Assembly: GCA_004431415.1 (NCBI GenBank)
Contig: QPMI01000597.1
Span: forward strand, 34,131 to 98,130
Reading direction: 5' to 3'
DNA: 64,000 nt
Source of the DNA: Cyanophora paradoxa CCMP329
Taxonomy: Eukaryota > Plantae > Glaucophyta
Below, piece after piece: positions 31,801 to 42,443 of this stretch. Below the pieces are notes generated by a model, which made no database searches, was not told the DNA's origin, and saw only the letters and a list, made by a program, of their open reading frames with translations. The translations under genes and the position numbers were made by a program. The number at the start of each line of letters is the position of its first letter. Position 1 is the stretch's first letter.

Positions 31801-33538
31801 GGGCAGGGGGAGCTAGCGCGGCACTACCACCCCTCGGTCGCCCGCTTCGCGCAGACGCTCCTCGCCGGCGAGCACGTCGGCTACCAGGCCCGCCCCCACG
31901 CCGCTGCCCGCAGGCGCTCTGCTCTCCCCGCTGAGGCGGGGCGCAGGGGGACCCGCTGAAGGACTTCGCCCTCTCCGCCTTCCTCGACCGCTTCGTGTAC
32001 AAGAACCCGAAGAAGTCGAGGACGGAGGAGGGCGCCCCCGCCCGCCAGCCCCTCAAGGTCCCCCGCCCCCGGCCCGCCCCCTCGCCGCCTCGCCGGGGCC
32101 GAGCGCGGGCGGGGCCAGAACGCGGGGTCGGTGACGCGGGCGGCGTACGTGGCGCGGGGGCTGGGGGAGGCGCCCGTGAACACGGCGGCGTTCCTGGAGC
32201 GGGGGGAGGGCGGGGTGGCGGAGGACGAGGTCTTCTTCCACAAGTTCTTCGCCGAGCGCCGCCGCCTCGAGGAGCTCCGCGCCCGCGGCAAGGCCCGCCG
32301 CAAGAAGAAGGGCGAGGGCGAGGGCGCCGAGGGCGACGAGGACGACGGCCTCGACGGGGTGCGACCCCGCGCGCCCCCCGGCCCCCCGCCGGCCCCGCCC
32401 GGGGCGGCGGCCGGCCGACGGGGCGGCCCCGCAGGTGGTGGACGCCGCGGTCGGCGAGGAGGACGACGACGACAGCGCCGTGCACCCCGCCCCGCCCCGC
32501 CGCCGCGCGGCCCTGGCCGATGCGCGCGCGCATGCACGGGGGCAGGACCTGGGCAGCCTGAGCAGCGACGACGACGACGGGGGCCTCGACTCGGGCTCGG
32601 ACTCGGGCTCGGAGGAGGAGGAGGAGGGCGGGGGCGGCGGCAGCGACGAGGACGAGGTGTGGTTCGAGGGGGAGGAGGACCAGGAGGTGGACGCCGCGCA
32701 GGCGCAGGCCCTCCTGAAGAAGCTCGCCGCCAAGGCCGGCGGCAAGAAGAAGAAGGGGGGCCGGGGCGGGGCGAGCGACGAGGAGGAGGCGTCGGAGATG
32801 GAGATGGGGGAGGAGGAGGCGGCGGCTTCGGAGGCCTCGGGGGACCTCGAGGTGGAGGGGGACGAGGCGATGGACGCCGCAGTCCGCGGCGACCTCCGCG
32901 GCAAGGCCCGCACCCCCTCCCCTCCCGCCCCGCCTCCCCCTTCCCCCTTGCTCTCTGAGGCGCCGCGCCGCAGATCGCCGAGCTCTTCGGCGGCGCCGTC
33001 GAGGAGGACGGCGAGGGCGAGGACGAGGAGGAGGCGGAGGAGGAGGAGGAGGAGGAGGGGCGGAAGGGGCGGGGCGGGAAGCGGCGGCGGCGGGAGGCGG
33101 GCGGGGAGGGGGCGACCTTCGCGAGCGCCGACGACTTTGCGGAGCTGCTCGAGCGCTCGGGCACCGACGAGCGCGGCGGCGCCTTCCACCCCAAGCAGGC
33201 CCGACGCCGCCCCCGCCCCGCCCCGCCCTCCCCTTCCGACTCGCCCCCGCCGCCCCGCAGATCGAGCACGAGCGGCGCGCCGAGCGGCGGGGCGGTGGCG
33301 GCCGGGGGCGGGGATGGCGCGGAGCTCCTCGCGGCGGCGGCGGCGGCAGCAGCAGCGAGGGCCGAGGAGGCGGCAACAGGGGCCGCGGCTTCGGCACCCG
33401 CGGCCGCGGCGGGGGCGGCCGCGGCGGGGGCGGGCGGGCGGGGGCGGCCGCGGCGGAGGCGGCCGGGGCAAGCGGCCCGGCTCGGGACGAGGGCGCGGAG
33501 GGCGAGGAGGCGGTGGCAAACGGGCCCGGACGTCCTAG
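28867..33538 (+). CDS. CEBPZ: CCAAT/enhancer-binding protein zeta / Mak21/Noc1 ribosome biogenesis factor
   Basis: GTLSDR|VAALT, YWHFEDRLK, KPEQEKVLLAAVVNKLGDP, KHPAMKRVV, ILAGVNRAFPF, RFYRALY, YDPRKREP, HYHPSV and FLDRFVYKNPKK; 14 introns placed. Confidence 0.96.
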
Positions 33539-33989
33539 TGTTTGGCGTATGCATTTTGACGCGACACGCGATGTCAGCTGCAGCTGGCTATGGCTAGCTT
33601 TCAACTGCTACAGAAGATCGCGTGTGCCCACGTATGCATCTCCGAGTCTTAGAGTGCGCGCGGCGCGTTCGCGTCGGGGAGTCGCCGGGGACGTCGACGC
33701 GTACGCCGGGCCGGGAGTCGGGAGTCGGGAGTCGATCAAGCTCTAGATCTAGATCTCGATCGCGAGAGTGCGCACCGCTTCGTACCGCGGCCGGCGGACC
33801 GCCGGCGGACCGGCGGCGGTACCGCTTCGGCCAGAGATGGGACGCCGCCAGCTGGCAGGGTACCGTATTATACGTACCGACGTTGCGAAATCGATTCATA
33901 TGCGCGTGATGTCACCTTCCGACCTTTGAGGGGTACACCTCGACCAGGTGCTTTGTGCGACCACCGGAACTTAGCCGCACGGCCCGCAC

Positions 33990-35273
33990 TAGGGCTGGGC
34001 CGGTGGCGGCCGGTGGCAGTGGCAACCTCCCACCGACCGACCGGGTGGAAAATCTGGCCCACCGCCATACAACGCCCGGTACCATACAAATTAAAATTCT
34101 AGGGGGGTAGGCTCGCAAAAATGTCATATTCTCGCGCGCGAAAGTTTCATATTCCGTACTCACCCAGCAAAGTGCTGCTTAGTTCATCTTCCTCCGCTCC
34201 TGCCTTGCAATCGTGAATGACGTCGGAGCCCAAGGAAGCTGACGTCGACGCCATCGATATCGATATCCCGTACCCCGCCTGAGCACCAACCACCCCGGCC
34301 TCCCCCACAACTGGCTTGAACCCGCCCCAATTGCAAAGCACTCGCTTTATAATAATTTAGATAGTAGGCGCGTAGCGCCTTGAAGCTGTGCCCTCCGGCC
34401 TTTGTTCTTGATACCGGACCGCCGCCTTTGCCTTCGTCTTCTGCTTCGCTGGTCGTATCCCGCCGGCGCCGGCGTACTTCGTCTTATAGTTTAGTTCGGT
34501 CTAGTTCGGATTCTGATCGTAGTGTTGATGCTAGAGTTAGTTTCAATACTAGCTATAGTCCTCGTGCTCGACCTGTTGTTCGCCGTCGTTTGCAAATTGC
34601 AGTTCGACTGCCCGCCTCGACCCCGGCCGGCTTTAGTGATTCCTTTGACTGTCCTTTTGCCTGCTCTTGATCCGCCTGCTCCGCCTCCTGTGTCCTCCTC
34701 GACCTCGTGCCGTAGCTCTGCCCTTTCGCGTCGTCCTGCTTCGCCTCCGCCTCCGGATCCGCGTCGTCTTGTTGTTCCTCTAGATCTTACTTGTCTGCTT
34801 CCTGTTATTTATCTTTCTCAAATTTGTCCTCCGCTTCTTAGTGATGTAATTCCTTCCGATATTGATGGTATCTCTAGCTCTGGCTCTTCTTCGTGTCAGT
34901 CATCCTCTGTCCCTAGCTAGATCTGCTCGATTTCTCGTCTCTTCTCGATCTGTCTCGAGCTCCGTGTCTTTTCTTTTTTATTGTCGATTTTGGCTCTTTG
35001 TCTTATCTTTCTTCGTGCTCTAGATCTTGTCTTAGTTATTTTGCTTTTTTGTCTTTATGCCCCCTGGGCAGCCCCCGCAGTGCTGGTGTCTAGAGACTGT
35101 GGCCGGTAATTTACCAAAAACAAAATGTGCAGAATTTAGCGTATTTCCTGTCAATTTTCACGCACTGTAGCACGTACCCCCACCTCCACCGACCGCCACC
35201 GGTGGGTAACAGTCAGCGGGCCCACCGACCCGGTGGGGGAAAACTCGGACTGTGCCCAGCCGGGCCAGCCCTA
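33990..35273. mobile_element. non-autonomous hAT-type DNA transposon (1284 bp)
   Basis: TIRs TAGGGCTGGGCCGG / CCGGGCCAGCCCTA (13/14 match). Exact 8-bp TSD GCCCGCAC at 33982-33989 and 35274-35281. Subterminal CCACCG/CGGTGG repeats at both ends. No transposase ORF. Confidence 0.92.
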
Positions 35274-35782
35274 GCCCGCACCCTGCGCGGCGCCGATCGG
35301 CCCCAGCGCAGCTTGCGCAGGGCTCCGAGCCTCCGAGGCTCGCGCGTGTGCGTGTGTGCGCGCGCAACGCGCTATCATTAGTATAGCAATCAACCGCACC
35401 CTACAGCTAGACCGGCGCTTGCAGCTGTGCACAGTTGATCTACAGCGCGCCTGTGTGCGGACTCGCCGAGTCGGGAGGGGATGCGCACCCTGCTACGAGC
35501 GTTGTGACTCTAGTGAGGTCATCAGCTGCAGAAGCTCGCTTGCTTATCAACTTGTGGAGAAGGGCTCGCCCGAAAGCCTGGCCTAGAGCCTGCAGACAGC
35601 TGCAGCCTGGCAGTCGCGTGTCAATCTCAGGCTGGCATGGTTTAGCTCAGGACTGCTTTTTGGTAGTTCGAAATCCTGGCTAGTCGCGCCTTCAACAGGA
35701 GGGGCGAACAGCAGCGTATACGTTCGGAGGTTCGCTGTCAGGGTGCCAGTTGCAGCGAGCCGGCAGCGACAAACCCGAAGTG

Positions 35783-38700
35783 ATGTCTTTCCTCAACTTC
35801 GAATTCTTTGGGGCGCTGAGCTCCAGACCTCAGGCGGCCGCGCCTCCGCCGCCGCCGACTCTGGGGACTGGAGCCGACGGCGAGGAGCTCCTCAGGGAGC
35901 TCGTCGAAGACATGCACGGAGGTGCTTCCGCGCGCGCGGTCGACCGCAGTCGAGCCACCTCGCTGACCGCGCGCATCACACCGCAGGGCTCCTGACGTTC
36001 GTGCGCGACCCGGATTACGACAGGAGGCATGACGCTTTCCTCGACGCGTGCGAGCAGCTCTGCCACCGCGTCGTGAGTTCGAATCGATTCCCGCCCCTCG
36101 GCCGGCGCCGCTGAGGCGTGGGCGGCGGGCGGCGCGGGAGCAGGAGCAGCTGGTGGACTCGAGCGTGAGCGCGTGGGAGGCGCTGCCGAGCGGGCAGTGC
36201 GGGACGGAGCTGCTCTCGTGGTGGCGGTGGCTGGACCCGCAGCTGGAGGCGCGGCGGGACGCGTACTACCGCTACGAGCTCGCCTTCCCGGGCGTCCCCG
36301 TCGAGTTCGTGCGCTCCGCCCTCTACAAGACCAACCGCGCCACCGAGTACATCCCCGTGCGCCCGCCCCCGCCGTCCCCCGCCCCCCGCCCGCCTCCGTG
36401 ACCGCTACCCGGTACGCTCCCAGGGCCTCTCGAGCTGCCGCCTCATCGAGCGTGCGCGCGCGGCGGCGCCTGTCCCGGCGCGAGGGCCGAGACGGGGCGC
36501 GCAGTGATCGAGGACCCTTCCCGCTTCCGGCGCCTCACCGTTATGCGCCACAAGCTGCAGTTCTTCAGTGCGCGCGGCTTGCGCCTGCCCGCCCCGCGGT
36601 GCCCGCCGCGTGACGCCCCGCGCGCGGCAGTGACAAAGATGGACTGCCCCGTCGTCCACATTACGAGTGCGCCGGGGGTCCGGCGGGCGCGTGGGGCGGG
36701 GGCGGGGGCTGAGGGGCGGGGGGCAGAGGACCTGGCGGGGGGGCGGTACCTGGCGGTGATGGCGGCGTGCACGGCGGCGCGGGGCGGCACGACGTGGGCC
36801 TTCGAGCCGCCCTACATGTACATGCCCCTCTCCGTCTCCGTCATCGCCCCCTCCCCGGCGGGGCCCGCCTCCACCACCCTCATCGGCATCGTCCTCCACG
36901 TCCGCCCCGCGCCCCGCGCCCCAGCGCCCCGCCCGCCCCGCCCCTCACCCCCGCCCCAGGACGAGGGCGTCGGCCGCCGCCTCGTCCCCGCTGCCCGTGC
37001 GCCCCCCGCTCTCCGCCCGCCCCGCCCCGCCGGCGTCGCGGCGGGGCCGACGGCGCCCGGACCGCGCAGTGGTGCGGCGGAGCCTGATGCGGCTCCTCTC
37101 GGGTCGGCGCTCAAGATCTGGGAGTGCGTGGCGGGGGCGCGGGGGCGCTGGGGGGTGGCTCTGGGCTGAGGGCGGGGGCGCGGGGGGCAGCCTGGTGCTC
37201 GGCGACTTCCAGCGCTCCAGGGACCTCGCCGCCCCGGCGCCCCGGCCCCTTCGCCCGCCCCCGCGCCCCGCCCCGCACCCCGCCCGCCACGTCCGCCCCG
37301 CCCCGCGCCCCGGCGCCCCGCGGGGGGGCGACGGAGGGCGCAGAAGGACTCGCTGCTCGCCGGCATCTGGGCGACCTTCCAGAGCGCCGCCAGGGTCAGC
37401 GCCCCACCCAGCCCCCCCCCCCCCCCCCCCGCTCCCCTCGCTCCGCCCCCCGACGCCCCGCAGAGCTCCTGGGAGTGGTGGCAGGGGAAGGAGGCGGGGG
37501 TGGGGCGGCCGCGCGCCCCGCCGGAGGAGGCGGACGAGGCCGACTCGATCGTGTACCGGCCCTCCGACCTGCTCCCCGCCGGGCCCTGCGTGCGCCCCGC
37601 CCCGCCCCGCCCGCCCCGCCCCGCCCCGCCCGCCCGCCCCGCCCCGCCCCGCCCCGCCCCGCCCGGCGACGCGTGCGCAGCAAACAATCGTGCGGGGGCT
37701 CTCCGGGGCGGGGGCGGCGGGGGCGCGGGCGCTGGCGCGGGCGGGGCGGTGCCGCAGGGGCGGGACGCGGACGTGGACGAGCAGTTCCGCGAGCTCGCGC
37801 TGCCCCTCGCCCGCGTCCCCGGCGTCGGGGGCACCCTCGCCGTCGTCGCCGCCCCTCCCACCGCGACCTCGCCCGCTTCGGGTGCGCCCGCCCCGCGCAG
37901 CCGCACCCCCCCCCCCCCCCCCCCCCGGCGCGCCGCCCCGCCGCCCCGGGCCCCCGCCGAGGGGCGGGCAGGGGGCAGCAGAGGCTGGTGGTGGCGCGGC
38001 GGGCGGCGGGCCCGGCGGGGAGCCTCGACGACGCCCTCGCGCGCCTCCTCGACGACATGGACCGTGCGCCCGCGCCGGCCCCGGCGCGCGCCCGGGCAGC
38101 GGCGCCCTCCCTGCCTTCTTACGGCGGGGCGCAGCGGTCCAGGACGTGGTCCTCGACCTCCTCACGCGCCGCATCGAGGCGATGGCCCTCCGCTCCGCCC
38201 TCCCCGCCCACGAGGCCCCCCGCCCCCTCCCCGGCGCCCCCACGGAGGCCGCCTCGCCGCCCCTGCCCGGCTCCTCCCGCGCCAGCGGCGACGAGGCGGC
38301 CACCGAGGGCGAGGGGGAGGGCCATGGCCCGCCGGCCCCAGCGCCAAGCGCGGCGGCCCCTCGGGCGCCCGCGCGCCACCAAGCGGGTGCGCTGGCGGGG
38401 CTGCGCGGGCGGGGGGCGGGGCCGGGGCTGAGGGGGCGGGGCGGGGCCAGGGGCGTGCGCGTCGGGGCGGGCCGACCCTCGGTGAGGTGGAGGGCGGGGC
38501 GGCGTACGAGTTCCTCGACCCGCGCGCCGCCGCCTCCCTCGCCGCCGGCACCGGCCAGCCCCTCCCGGGCGTCCAGTCCGGCACCGGCAAGGTCCGCACC
38601 CCCGCCCTGGCCCCGCCCCACCCGCCCCACCCGCGCCTCGCCGCCTCACGCGGGGCCGTTGCGCAGCTCGTGCCACCCCCGAACGCGTGGGCGCGCCCGG

Positions 38701-39941
38701 CGCTCGCCGCTCCTCGCGTGGCGCACGGGGTCTGACGGGGCGCGGCGCGCCGCAGATCCTCTTCTACCGCTCGAAGCGGCAGGAGATGGTGCAGGCGCGG
38801 CTGGAGGCGGCGCAGCGGGGCGAGGCGTCGCGGCCGGCGGAGGGGAAGACGCGGCACGGGGAGATGCTGGAGTCGATCCGGGCGGCGTGGCGGACGGCGT
38901 CGGAGGCGGAGCGGGCGCCCTTCGAGAAGATGGCGCGCGCCGCCCAGGAGGCCTTCAAGGCCGCCTTCCCCAACTACAAGGCCCGCCCCGCCCCGCCCCG
39001 CCCCGCCCCGCCCCGCCCCGCCCCGCGCCCCTCTGAGCGAGCGGGGCGCGCGGGGGCAGTTCAAGCGGATGTCGAAGCGGCAGAAGGAGGAGGCGGCGGC
39101 GCGGGAGGAGCAGGAGGCGGCGGCGCTCGCCCTGGGGCGCCCCCCGGGGGCCCTCCGCGTCCTCTCCGCCCCCGAGCTCCTCGCCGCCGCCGGCCCCGAC
39201 GGCCCCTTCTTCCCCTTCCTCCCCGCCTCCCTCCCGCCCCCGCCCCTCGTGCTCGCCCCGGGGGCCCCCCGCGAGGAGCCGCCCGAGCAGCGCAAGCGCG
39301 CCCGCACCGACGCCCTCCGGCGCGCCGCCTCGCCCCAGGCGCCGCACTCGTGGCCGGCCCTCCCCGGCCCCGGCGGAGGCGGCGCCGGGGCCCGCCCCTC
39401 GCCTCGCCCCAGCCCAGCACCTCCTCCTCCTCCGCAGCCTCCCCGCACCGCTCCGGCGCGCCCCGCACCGCTCCCGCCTCCCCCTTCCCTTCTCCCCGCA
39501 CGCCGCGCCCCGGGCGCTGCGGGGGGCCCCGGAGCCCCCGCGTCGCCGGCCTCGCCGCCGACGTCGGCGCCGGGGTCGCCGGGGGCGAGCGCCGCGCCGG
39601 GGGCGGCTTCTGGGACCTCGGCCTCGCGGGCCCCGCCCCGCTCGTCGGCCCCGCCTTCCTCCCCCCGCTCGCCCACTCCTACGGCCCCTTCGCGCAGCCG
39701 CCCGGCGGGGCCCCGGGGCCCTCTACCCGGCGCCCCCGTCCCCTTCCTCTTCAGCGCCGCCCTCGGCCCCGCCGCGCCGGCCCCCCCGCACCCCTACGCT
39801 GCAGCCGCCCGCCCGGCGGCGGCGACGGGGGCGTTCGGGGCGGGGCGGGGGCCGGGGGCGGCGGGGAGCGCGCCCCCCGTGCCGCCCTCGCTGGACGCCT
39901 GGGCGCCCCCCGAGAGCGCCCACGACCCCTTCGCAATGTGA
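35783..39941 (+). CDS. HMG-box (MATA/SOX-like) protein with an N-terminal START/SRPBCC-like domain
   Basis: HMG box: GK|LVPPPNAW|ILFYRSKR...IRAAWRTASEAERAPFEKMARAAQEAFKAAFPNYK|FKR (38667-39075). START-like pattern at ~36260-37100. No intergenic-type DNA lies between the two. Confidence 0.72.
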
Positions 39942-40447
39942 CAGCCGGCGCCGCGCCGCGCCGCCCCCCTCGAGGCGAGAGGCCTGCTGCAGCTCCCCGC
40001 CGTGTGTACTTCGATAGGCCCTCAAGCAGGCTCCGACCGCCATGCAAGCTCGCGCCCGCGCCTTCTTTCGAATGCCCTCCCAATTCCGGTTCGCAACGTC
40101 CGACGGTCGCTCTTCAGAAAGGCTTCGACCATGGGGACTTTCATGACCGCCGGCCCCGACGTCTCGACGTCGCTTCCTTCAGCTGTTGTAACGTAGTGCC
40201 ACAGCCCCGGCGCAGTCCGCCGACGCCGCGACGGTCGTAGGCTATAGCAAGTTTACTAGATTCGTCTTAGGCATGGCCATAGACCCGGGACGTCGAGCGT
40301 AAAAGCAGTTTCATTTCAGGTTCAGTTTGCTTTCAAATTTTCCTCAATTCAGTCTTGCATAGTGCGTACTAGTATGAGATCGTATGTTTTCTGCACTCAA
40401 TCGCGCTGCAGCAATCAGCTGCAGGTTTCATTGTCGATCAACGACGA

Positions 40448-42443
40448 TCAGTCGTGGAGGAGGGCAGAGACGGAGGGCTGCGGGGCGCGGGGCCCCTTGC
40501 CGCCGCTGGCAGCGGCAGCGACGGCGGCGGTTGGGTCGAAGATGCGGCGCCCGACCCCCGAGTTGAGGGGGATCTCTAGCAGCGCGTCGCGGCTCGAGCG
40601 CAGCGGCGCCTGCGGGCGGCTCCGCGGCGCCGAGGCGGGGCGGCCGCCCGCCGCCGGCGCCTCCTCGGCCGTTGCGGAGGCGGGGCGGCCCCGGGGGCTT
40701 GGCCCCGGGCGCCCGGAGGGGGCGGCGGCGCAGGAGGCGCGGAGGGCGGCCTTGGCGCGGCCGGCGGAGCGGCGGGCGCGGCTGCGGGCGGCGAGGAGCG
40801 AGGCGAGCAGCTCCTGGCTCGTCTTGGGCCCGGGGCCCGCCGAGTCCCGCCCCGCCCCGAGGCCGAGCCCGAGGCGGAGGCTGAGCCCGGGGCCGGGGCG
40901 GCGCGGCGGCGCTCGACGCGGCTCGGGCCCTCGCCGCACGTCTCCGGCGCCGGGGCCTCCCCCCGGGGGCGCCCCCGGGCCGCCTCGCCCTCGCCCTCGC
41001 CCCCGCGGCGGCCGTCGGAGGGGCGGGAGGCGAGGGCGTCGAGGGCGGCGAAGGCGTCGGAGGGGCGCGGGGCGGGGCGGCGGGGTGCTCGGGGGAGGCG
41101 AGCTGGAGGGCGGCGGCGAGCTCGCGGTCGGCCGCCACGTAGCATCGGATGAGCGACTGGATCATCCGCTGCCGCCCCGCCTCAGCGCGAGGCCCCGGGC
41201 CCGGCCCGGGGGACGGGGCGGGGGGGGACCTTAAGCTCGGCCTGGCGCTTGACGGGGAGGTTCCGCGCCGTCCCCGAGATCGAGATCAGCGGCGACGCCG
41301 GCAGCTGCCGCGCCCCGCCCCCGCCGGCCACCTCCTCCGGCGAGCCGTGCCCCGCCCCGTCGCTCGGGCGCCGCTGGGCGGGGGCGGGGCGGCGGGGAGC
41401 TTGCCCTCGCCCTGGAGCTGCCCGCGCAGCTCCTCGAAGCGGCGCTCCGCCTCCGCGAGCTCCGCCGCCACCCGCTCCGCCCACTCCGCCCGCCCCACGA
41501 TCCGCGCCGCCCCGCCGCCGACGAAGAGGCACCGCCTTGCGCCCGCGGCGTCACTGCCGTTGCCGCCGCCGGTTCCGGGGAGCCCACGGGCCGAGGGGGC
41601 GGCGGGATGGCGGCGGGACGCGAGGGCGTCGGCGGGGCGCCGCTGCCGGCACCGGCGTGCTCGGCTCAACGGGAGGGAGCTTGTGCGCAGGGACGGGGTG
41701 GGGGGAGGCGGGAGCGGTCGCCCCGCCCGCGCGGGAGACGGCGCGGGGAGCGGCGCCGGCGCCGGTTGCGGTGCAGCGTCGGGTGGCGGCGCGGGGCCGG
41801 CAAGGGGAGGGGGCGGGGGAGGGTCGGGGCCGGGGCCGGGGGAAGGCGGGGCGGGGGCGTCGGGGGCGGTGTGGAGGGAGTCGAGGCGGAAGGAGACGGA
41901 GAGGCGCTTCTTGGGCTTGCGCGCCGAGGCCGGCCCCGAGGCCCCCGAGGCACTGCTCGAGACCGACCGCGCGCTCCCCACCGACCGCTGCGACGCCGAC
42001 GCCTCCTCCCCCGCCACCGCATCCCCGCCCCCGCCCTCCGCCGCTGCCGAGCGCGCGCTCGTGTGCTCGGTCGTCGGGTCGGTGTCCTCCTCCACCGCCG
42101 AGCGCGCCGTCCTCGTCGCTGAAGGCGTCGCCAGCGCAAGCAGCGCCACGTTCCCCGTGAAGCTCAGCCGCTTCTGCACGCCAGGTCCCGGCGAGAAGAG
42201 CGACGCCGAGTCGCCCGGCCTGCCGCACGGCGCGGCTGAGCGACCCCTCGCGCAGGGAAGGAGGCAGCCGCACCTCAGCGCGCTCCCCGGTGTCTTGGGC
42301 TTGAATCCCGTGAAGACAACGCTCGGGCTCGCGCACTGCCTGCTCGCCGCGACGTGCGCGGGCGTCTTCACCGCCCCCGCAACCGTCTTCTTCGATTTCT
42401 TCCCGCGGCCCAGGAGCCGGAGAAGCTTCGACTTCAACCCCAT
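40448..42443 (-). CDS. hypothetical low-complexity protein
   Basis: MGLKSKLLRLLGRGKKSKK start, spliceable exons, a coiled segment AEWAERVAAELAEAERRFEELRGQL, and DPMIQSLIRCYVAADREL. No domain recognised. Confidence 0.55.

Follow-up and report, generated by a model that had tools for sequence, protein, structure and literature searches.

A spliced Cyanophora paradoxa gene with a SOX/SRY-class HMG box and a candidate START-like domain

Gene structure, transcripts and assembly errors

We analyzed a stretch of 64,000 nucleotides (the window) of the glaucophyte Cyanophora paradoxa CCMP329 (GenBank assembly GCA_004431415.1, contig QPMI01000597.1, positions 34,131 to 98,130 of the forward strand) and describe here one gene within it, which encodes an HMG box closest to those of SRY and SOX proteins and, ahead of the box, a predicted START-like domain. 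The gene has multiple exons on the plus strand and runs from the ATG at position 35783 of the window to the TGA at 39939-41. These limits agree with an initial annotation made from the sequence alone, in whose reading frame the stop lies. The window consists of eukaryotic DNA of very high GC content, and the gene occupies a block (35750-40000) of 67-88% GC. Troughs of low GC (44-63%) flank this block at its two ends only (33500-35750 and 40000-40500), and similar troughs separate other GC-high blocks of the window, which we take to be neighboring genes. Read in three frames, the block resolves into short coding pieces between introns of 53-168 bases, for which a splice-site scan gave GTGCGC donors and CAG acceptors. 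There are about 18 exons and 17 introns, and the product, corrected with RNA, is about 970 amino acids (aa) long. The features of the gene are collected in Table 1.

The gene is spliced and expressed. Three public runs from two studies (X1, X3 and X5) supplied spliced RNA contigs, and a further run (X9) supplied unspliced DNA contigs. Nine GT..AG joints were seen directly in the RNA contigs and match the exon borders as drawn. Three further introns fit the positions in the contig records: 38387-38450, 38691-38755 and 38981-39059. For example, the 79 record letters between 38972 and 39131 equal 8 + 71 exon bases. The last two of these introns have GC donors (GCGCGC and GCCCGC) instead of GT, the only 2 of the 17 introns that do, and both interrupt the HMG box, where the contig arithmetic supports them as GC-AG introns. 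On the N-terminal side, one contig begins in the 5' leader (at 35368-35473), takes in exons 1-9 and ends within exon 10 near 37247; the C-terminal contigs pick up at about 38257, reach 39387 and continue to 40474. The peptides quoted in the initial annotation are all present, and their exon borders coincide with GT..AG joints of the RNA contigs. Its exon joins were right in their borders but misread the split codons, which correctly read ...CRLIE-L-IEDPS..., ...VHIT-K-DLAGG... and ...VPAA-L-VRRSL....

Some observations on splicing stand apart from the gene model. Introns 5, 6 and 7 (36568-36630, 36667-36726 and 36900-36959) are 63, 60 and 60 bases long and free of in-frame stops, so that their retention would leave the frame open across exons 5-8. 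Tandem CAG/GAG acceptors of the NAGNAG-like kind precede exon 3 (36139-36150), of which the RNA contigs use 36144. Two long C runs lie in introns, one of 19 bases (37412-37430, intron 10) and one of 21 bases (37906-37926, intron 12).

Table 1. Features of the gene, in window coordinates
Feature	Position	Strand	Support and remarks
5' untranslated leader	35368..35782	+	RNA contigs start at 35368-35473; in the upstream low-GC trough
Exons 1-2 (35783-35921, 35987-36072), aa 1-75	35783..36072	+	RNA joints; leader weakly predicted helical (AlphaFold helices, pLDDT 50-62); no family match in Pfam
START-like domain (predicted), aa ~85-290	36144..37250	+	Exons 3-9 and the beginning of exon 10 (37191 onward); ESM Atlas
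Exons 3-9	36144-36356, 36424-36451, 36505-36567, 36631-36666, 36727-36899, 36960-36996, 37070-37123	+	Joints through 36996/37070 in RNA contigs
Linker exons (37191-37394, 37464-37589, 37758-37881, 37972-38063, 38135-38386, 38451-38591)	37191..38591	+	Splice-site scan, frame closure
HMG box, aa ~591-677 after RNA correction (651-737 in the public model P0001)	38589..39068	+	Pfam, PDB sequence search, RNA contig arithmetic
C-terminal tail	39069..39941	+	Basic/acidic helix (KRQKEEAAAREEQE), then a Pro/Ala/Ser-rich low-complexity stretch
3' untranslated region (probable)	39942..40474	+	RNA contigs reach 40454-40474; in a low-GC trough
RNA-seen joints	35921/35987, 36072/36144, 36356/36424, 36451/36505, 36567/36631, 36666/36727, 36899/36960, 36996/37070, 38591/38667	+

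The RNA contigs differ from the window by ten one-base insertions, at 37100, 37231, 37851, 38335, 38367, 39386 (in X5 only), 39486, 39520, 39714 and 39725. All ten sites sit in runs of G or C, and seven of them have no coverage at all in the DNA run. The Cyanophora genome was assembled from PacBio reads, corrected with Illumina reads and annotated with BRAKER1/Augustus (PMC6704402). Because of the position of the sites in G/C runs, the missing DNA depth at 7 of the 10 and this mode of assembly, the insertions are likely to reflect homopolymer deletions of the long reads that were left unpolished in the assembly. RNA editing was considered as their source and rejected, since long-read errors are the simpler account of differences confined to G or C runs and mostly at sites of zero DNA depth. 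With the RNA-seen insertions in place, all exons, from the one with the ATG through the last, join in frame via consensus sites (GTGCGC/GCGCGC..CAG) to give the chain of ~970 aa. In the last exon, five RNA-seen deletions disturb the frame, and one more, unseen, is required to reach the TGA. Record 8 of X3 (39437-39860) reports five gaps, of which only four are listed within its range.

The same gene is present in EukProt as EP00741_Cyanophora_paradoxa_P020735 (tig00021293_g20015.t1; hereafter P0001), a model of 1027 aa that holds both halves. Over aa 1-258 and throughout the HMG box, P0001 is identical to the RNA-supported chain; where the assembly is frameshifted, it reads through introns or in wrong frames. 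At 37100 (plus strand), where the assembly lacks a base, the RNA contigs carry an extra G and the public model retains intron 8. P0001 has 35 junk residues in place of LVRRSLMRLLS, part of the would-be C-terminal helix of the START-like domain; the corrected putative helix reads LVRRSLMRLLSGSALKIWDLVLGDF. The public Cyanophora assembly thus keeps one-base deletions where Illumina DNA coverage is nil, which corrupts P0001 and concerns users of the proteome.

Two further observations were made at the ends of the gene. The RNA contigs continue for about 530 bases beyond the stop (39848-40474) and enter the low-GC trough ahead of the following GC-rich block, which begins at 40500; they may mark an extended 3' untranslated region, perhaps shared with a convergent neighbor. 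Upstream, 48 bases at 35214-35261 have a DNA contig depth of 220-285, versus ~30 nearby, and resemble a high-copy repeat.

The HMG box and the N-terminal domain

The HMG box is encoded by three exons: a K (38589-91) and LVPPPNAW (38667-38690) come from either side of one intron, the bulk of the box from 38756-38980, and FKR from 39060 onward. The central exon alone matches Pfam HMG_box (PF00505) with 26.4 bits, and residues 640-760 of P0001 match it with 28.7 bits (E 1.8e-6), both above the gathering cut-off of 25.4. The match is beyond chance, and the box is genuine and complete as far as its sequence tells. In a sequence search against the PDB, the best 23 matches were all SRY or SOX proteins (E 1.2e-4 to 0.076), and HMGB1 appeared in the same search at only E 0.68-4.6. 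The box opens with PPPNAWILF, containing a P-x-N-A-W-I motif, and closes with PNYKFKR. Boxes of the sequence-specific class carry Asn as residue 10 and Ile or Met as the hydrophobic wedge in P-x-N-A-F-[IM]; in the non-specific HMGB class, residue 10 is Ser. Assignment of the box to the sequence-specific class (SOX/SRY/TCF/MATA), nearer to SOX/SRY than to HMGB, is therefore supported, as judged from the ranking of matches and not from a tree. The initial annotation had placed the box in this class rather than with HMGB and had noted an insert after helix 1, and both statements hold: relative to SRY, about 14 residues are inserted between helix 1 and helix 2. A single-sequence AlphaFold model of the HMG region was moderately confident (pLDDT 68.9, pTM 0.32) and merged helices 2 and 3; its best Foldseek match was SOX2 (1gt0_D), which at E 3.7 is not significant. 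We also considered an AT-hook in the final part of exon 16 and rejected it, since the RNA-corrected sequence there, though basic, has no R-G-R-P core.

Between the two domains lies a linker rich in Ala, Pro and Gly. It contains acidic helical patches (EEADEADSIVY, DADVDEQFRELAL and SLDDALARLLDDMDPVQDVVLDLL) and a basic stretch, SAKRGG..RATKR-GRARR. Its joints 38386/38451 and 38591/38667 are supported by RNA, and for the exons between 37250 and 38250 the contigs show no joint.

For the N-terminal domain, the one positive tool result came from a feature search of the ESM Atlas with aa 70-260 of P0001. Among the 30 best-matching clusters, 26 are annotated with the START family (PF01852), at scores of 0.94-0.95. 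The highest score, 0.95, came with 190 shared features; the top matches share 171-190, and among them is a cluster named phosphatidylcholine-transfer-protein-like. The size of the domain, ~200 aa, also fits the length of eukaryotic START domains (PMC13525633).

Proposed function and its alternatives

On balance, we lean toward a single nuclear gene of ~18 exons whose ~970-aa product, made up of a START-like N terminus, a disordered linker, an HMG box of the SOX/SRY class and a tail rich in Pro, would be a ligand-responsive transcription factor. In the mechanism that we propose, the ~200-aa N-terminal domain most likely adopts the START (helix-grip) fold that binds lipids or sterols. The long disordered linker would contribute acidic, activation-like patches and, just before the box, a basic stretch resembling a nuclear-targeting signal. 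Through contacts in the minor groove, the HMG box would recognize particular DNA sites and bend them, and the START-like domain would tune dimerization and DNA-binding competence according to a hydrophobic ligand, by analogy with HD-ZIP III factors (PMC10226595). The protein as a whole would be a transcription factor responsive to a small hydrophobic ligand, assembled among glaucophytes through domain capture. Control of the factor by lipids is speculative, as is any part that it may play in sex; independent evolution, responsiveness to lipids and a developmental or sexual role, all suggested in the initial annotation, remain inference. A mating-type role was rejected because nothing at the locus points to one.

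Several points weigh against this reading, and we take each with the alternative on which it bears. To begin with, ligand binding and DNA binding by the protein are putative. The START-like domain could be real and yet sense no ligand, serving only as a module for dimerization, stability or localization. The START domain of GLABRA2 reportedly mediates dimerization and turnover, to judge by the title of a preprint (10.1101/2021.11.23.469727). In HD-ZIP III factors, START promotes dimerization and potency, and these effects are portable to other factors; however, it is ligand binding that renders these factors competent for DNA, and ligand-binding mutants lose DNA-binding competence (PMC10226595). 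We regard a START-like domain that senses nothing as unlikely, if well worth keeping in mind.

The likeness to START could also be a false lead, with the HMG box joined to an alpha/beta domain that is peculiar to the lineage and has no kinship with START. All sequence-profile methods were negative for the N-terminal region. Pfam returned neither START/SRPBCC nor any other family for single exons, for residues 60-330 of P0001 or for its N terminus, even at E 10, and a PDB sequence search with N-terminal pieces gave nothing relevant. In a HMMER search of 1.84 billion representatives with the stop-free stretch that includes exons 5-8, the sole match was P0001 itself. A word-index protein search with residues 60-320 of P0001 likewise returned only the query's own entry, metagenome scans with exon 3 and with aa 147-258 found no relative, and an ESM Atlas search with exon 3 alone gave no usable match. 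Since there were no relatives from which to build an alignment, AlphaFold was run on the single sequence (residues 30-325 of P0001) and failed, with a mean pLDDT of 38.7 and no usable fold. For the same reason, conservation is unusable as evidence. The Atlas scores have a limit of their own, in that a shuffled protein reaches 0.95 about once in 100 and the calibration does not extend to parts of proteins. What speaks against an unrelated domain is that 26 of the 30 clusters belong to one family, with a number of shared features that the tool's calibration finds typical of true members, and that the domain, as read from its sequence, has a length that suits a helix-grip fold, with hydrophobic strands coming first and an extended amphipathic helix closing its C-terminal end. 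The helix-grip pattern that the initial annotation had proposed by eye finds support in the Atlas search but not in Pfam, the PDB search or fold prediction. We consider an unrelated domain distinctly unlikely and conclude that the N-terminal domain probably has the START fold.

The remaining alternative is that two adjacent genes, one for a START-like protein and one for an HMG-box protein, were fused by the gene predictor. None of the RNA contigs listed spans 37250-38250, the RNA depth at 37324-37500 is 0, and the public model is itself an Augustus prediction on an error-laden assembly. In addition, open frames are weak evidence at 80% GC, and exon 10 (37191-37394) is partly of low complexity and may hide an inner intron. 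The gap in the contigs is nevertheless technical, because the DNA run is nearly empty there as well (depth 1.84 at 37324-37500) and this stretch contains the 19-base C run and is 88% GC. The GC content stays at 0.67-0.88 without a break over 35750-40000, with no intergenic trough inside. Exons 12-16 close in frame through consensus sites only with the RNA-seen insertion at 37851, and the coding frame has no ATG from exon 10 to 38055. Two fused genes are therefore quite improbable, and because of the unbroken GC-rich block, the frame closure with 37851, the lack of an earlier in-frame ATG and the public single-gene model, both halves probably belong to one gene.

Relation to known systems and significance

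A START domain together with a DNA-binding domain has so far been a hallmark of the plant HD-ZIP III/IV factors, and the way in which START controls transcription has been explained only recently. The Cyanophora product resembles these factors (PHABULOSA, GLABRA2, PDF2) in combining a START(-like) with a DNA-binding domain within a single chain and in the proposed logic, whereby a ligand or START-driven dimerization would tune DNA binding (PMC10226595). It differs from them in that its DNA-binding domain is an HMG box rather than a homeodomain-leucine zipper, in its reversed order, with the START-like domain first and the DNA-binding domain last, in the lack of detectable sequence similarity to plant START domains, and in its glaucophyte host. 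Since P0001 also has no Pfam match to Homeobox, the gene would be an analogue of HD-ZIP III/IV and not a member.

Compared with SRY/SOX proteins (and with fungal MATA and TCF/LEF), the protein shares a single box with a P-x-N-A-[FW]-[IM] start, the conserved Trp in helix 2 and a PNYK[YF] end. SRY and SOX are its best sequence matches in the PDB, yet the similarity amounts to just ~25-30 bits, and the 14 residues inserted between helices 1 and 2, the absence of SOX group-specific flanks and the fusion to a START-like domain set it apart. The N-terminal domain is in turn most like the stand-alone START proteins of the PCTP/StARD2 type, in that its nearest language-model clusters are START (one of them phosphatidylcholine-transfer-protein-like) and its length is ~200 aa. 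Unlike these, it has no sequence-profile match and is a predicted domain inside a nuclear-type protein of ~970 aa.

Full-text searches of the literature found no paper that pairs START with an HMG box; the single paper in which all the terms occurred is a study of mouse brain on an unrelated subject. The Cyanophora genome paper (PMC6704402) mentions neither START nor HMG, and a 2026 review of START does not mention HMG. If the pairing is true, a START-HMG protein in a glaucophyte would mean that, in a deeply branching archaeplastid lineage, the same regulatory module has been captured by another kind of DNA-binding domain, and it would offer a simple unicellular system in which to ask which lipid is sensed. 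More tentatively, and with considerable doubt on our part, glaucophytes may have independently built a ligand-gated transcription factor from a START pocket and a SOX-like HMG box, the third such design, with this gene as a fast-evolving copy in a lineage-specific set. If so, it would be a third invention of a hydrophobic-ligand sensor coupled to a DNA-binding domain, beside the nuclear receptors of animals and the HD-ZIP III/IV factors of plants.

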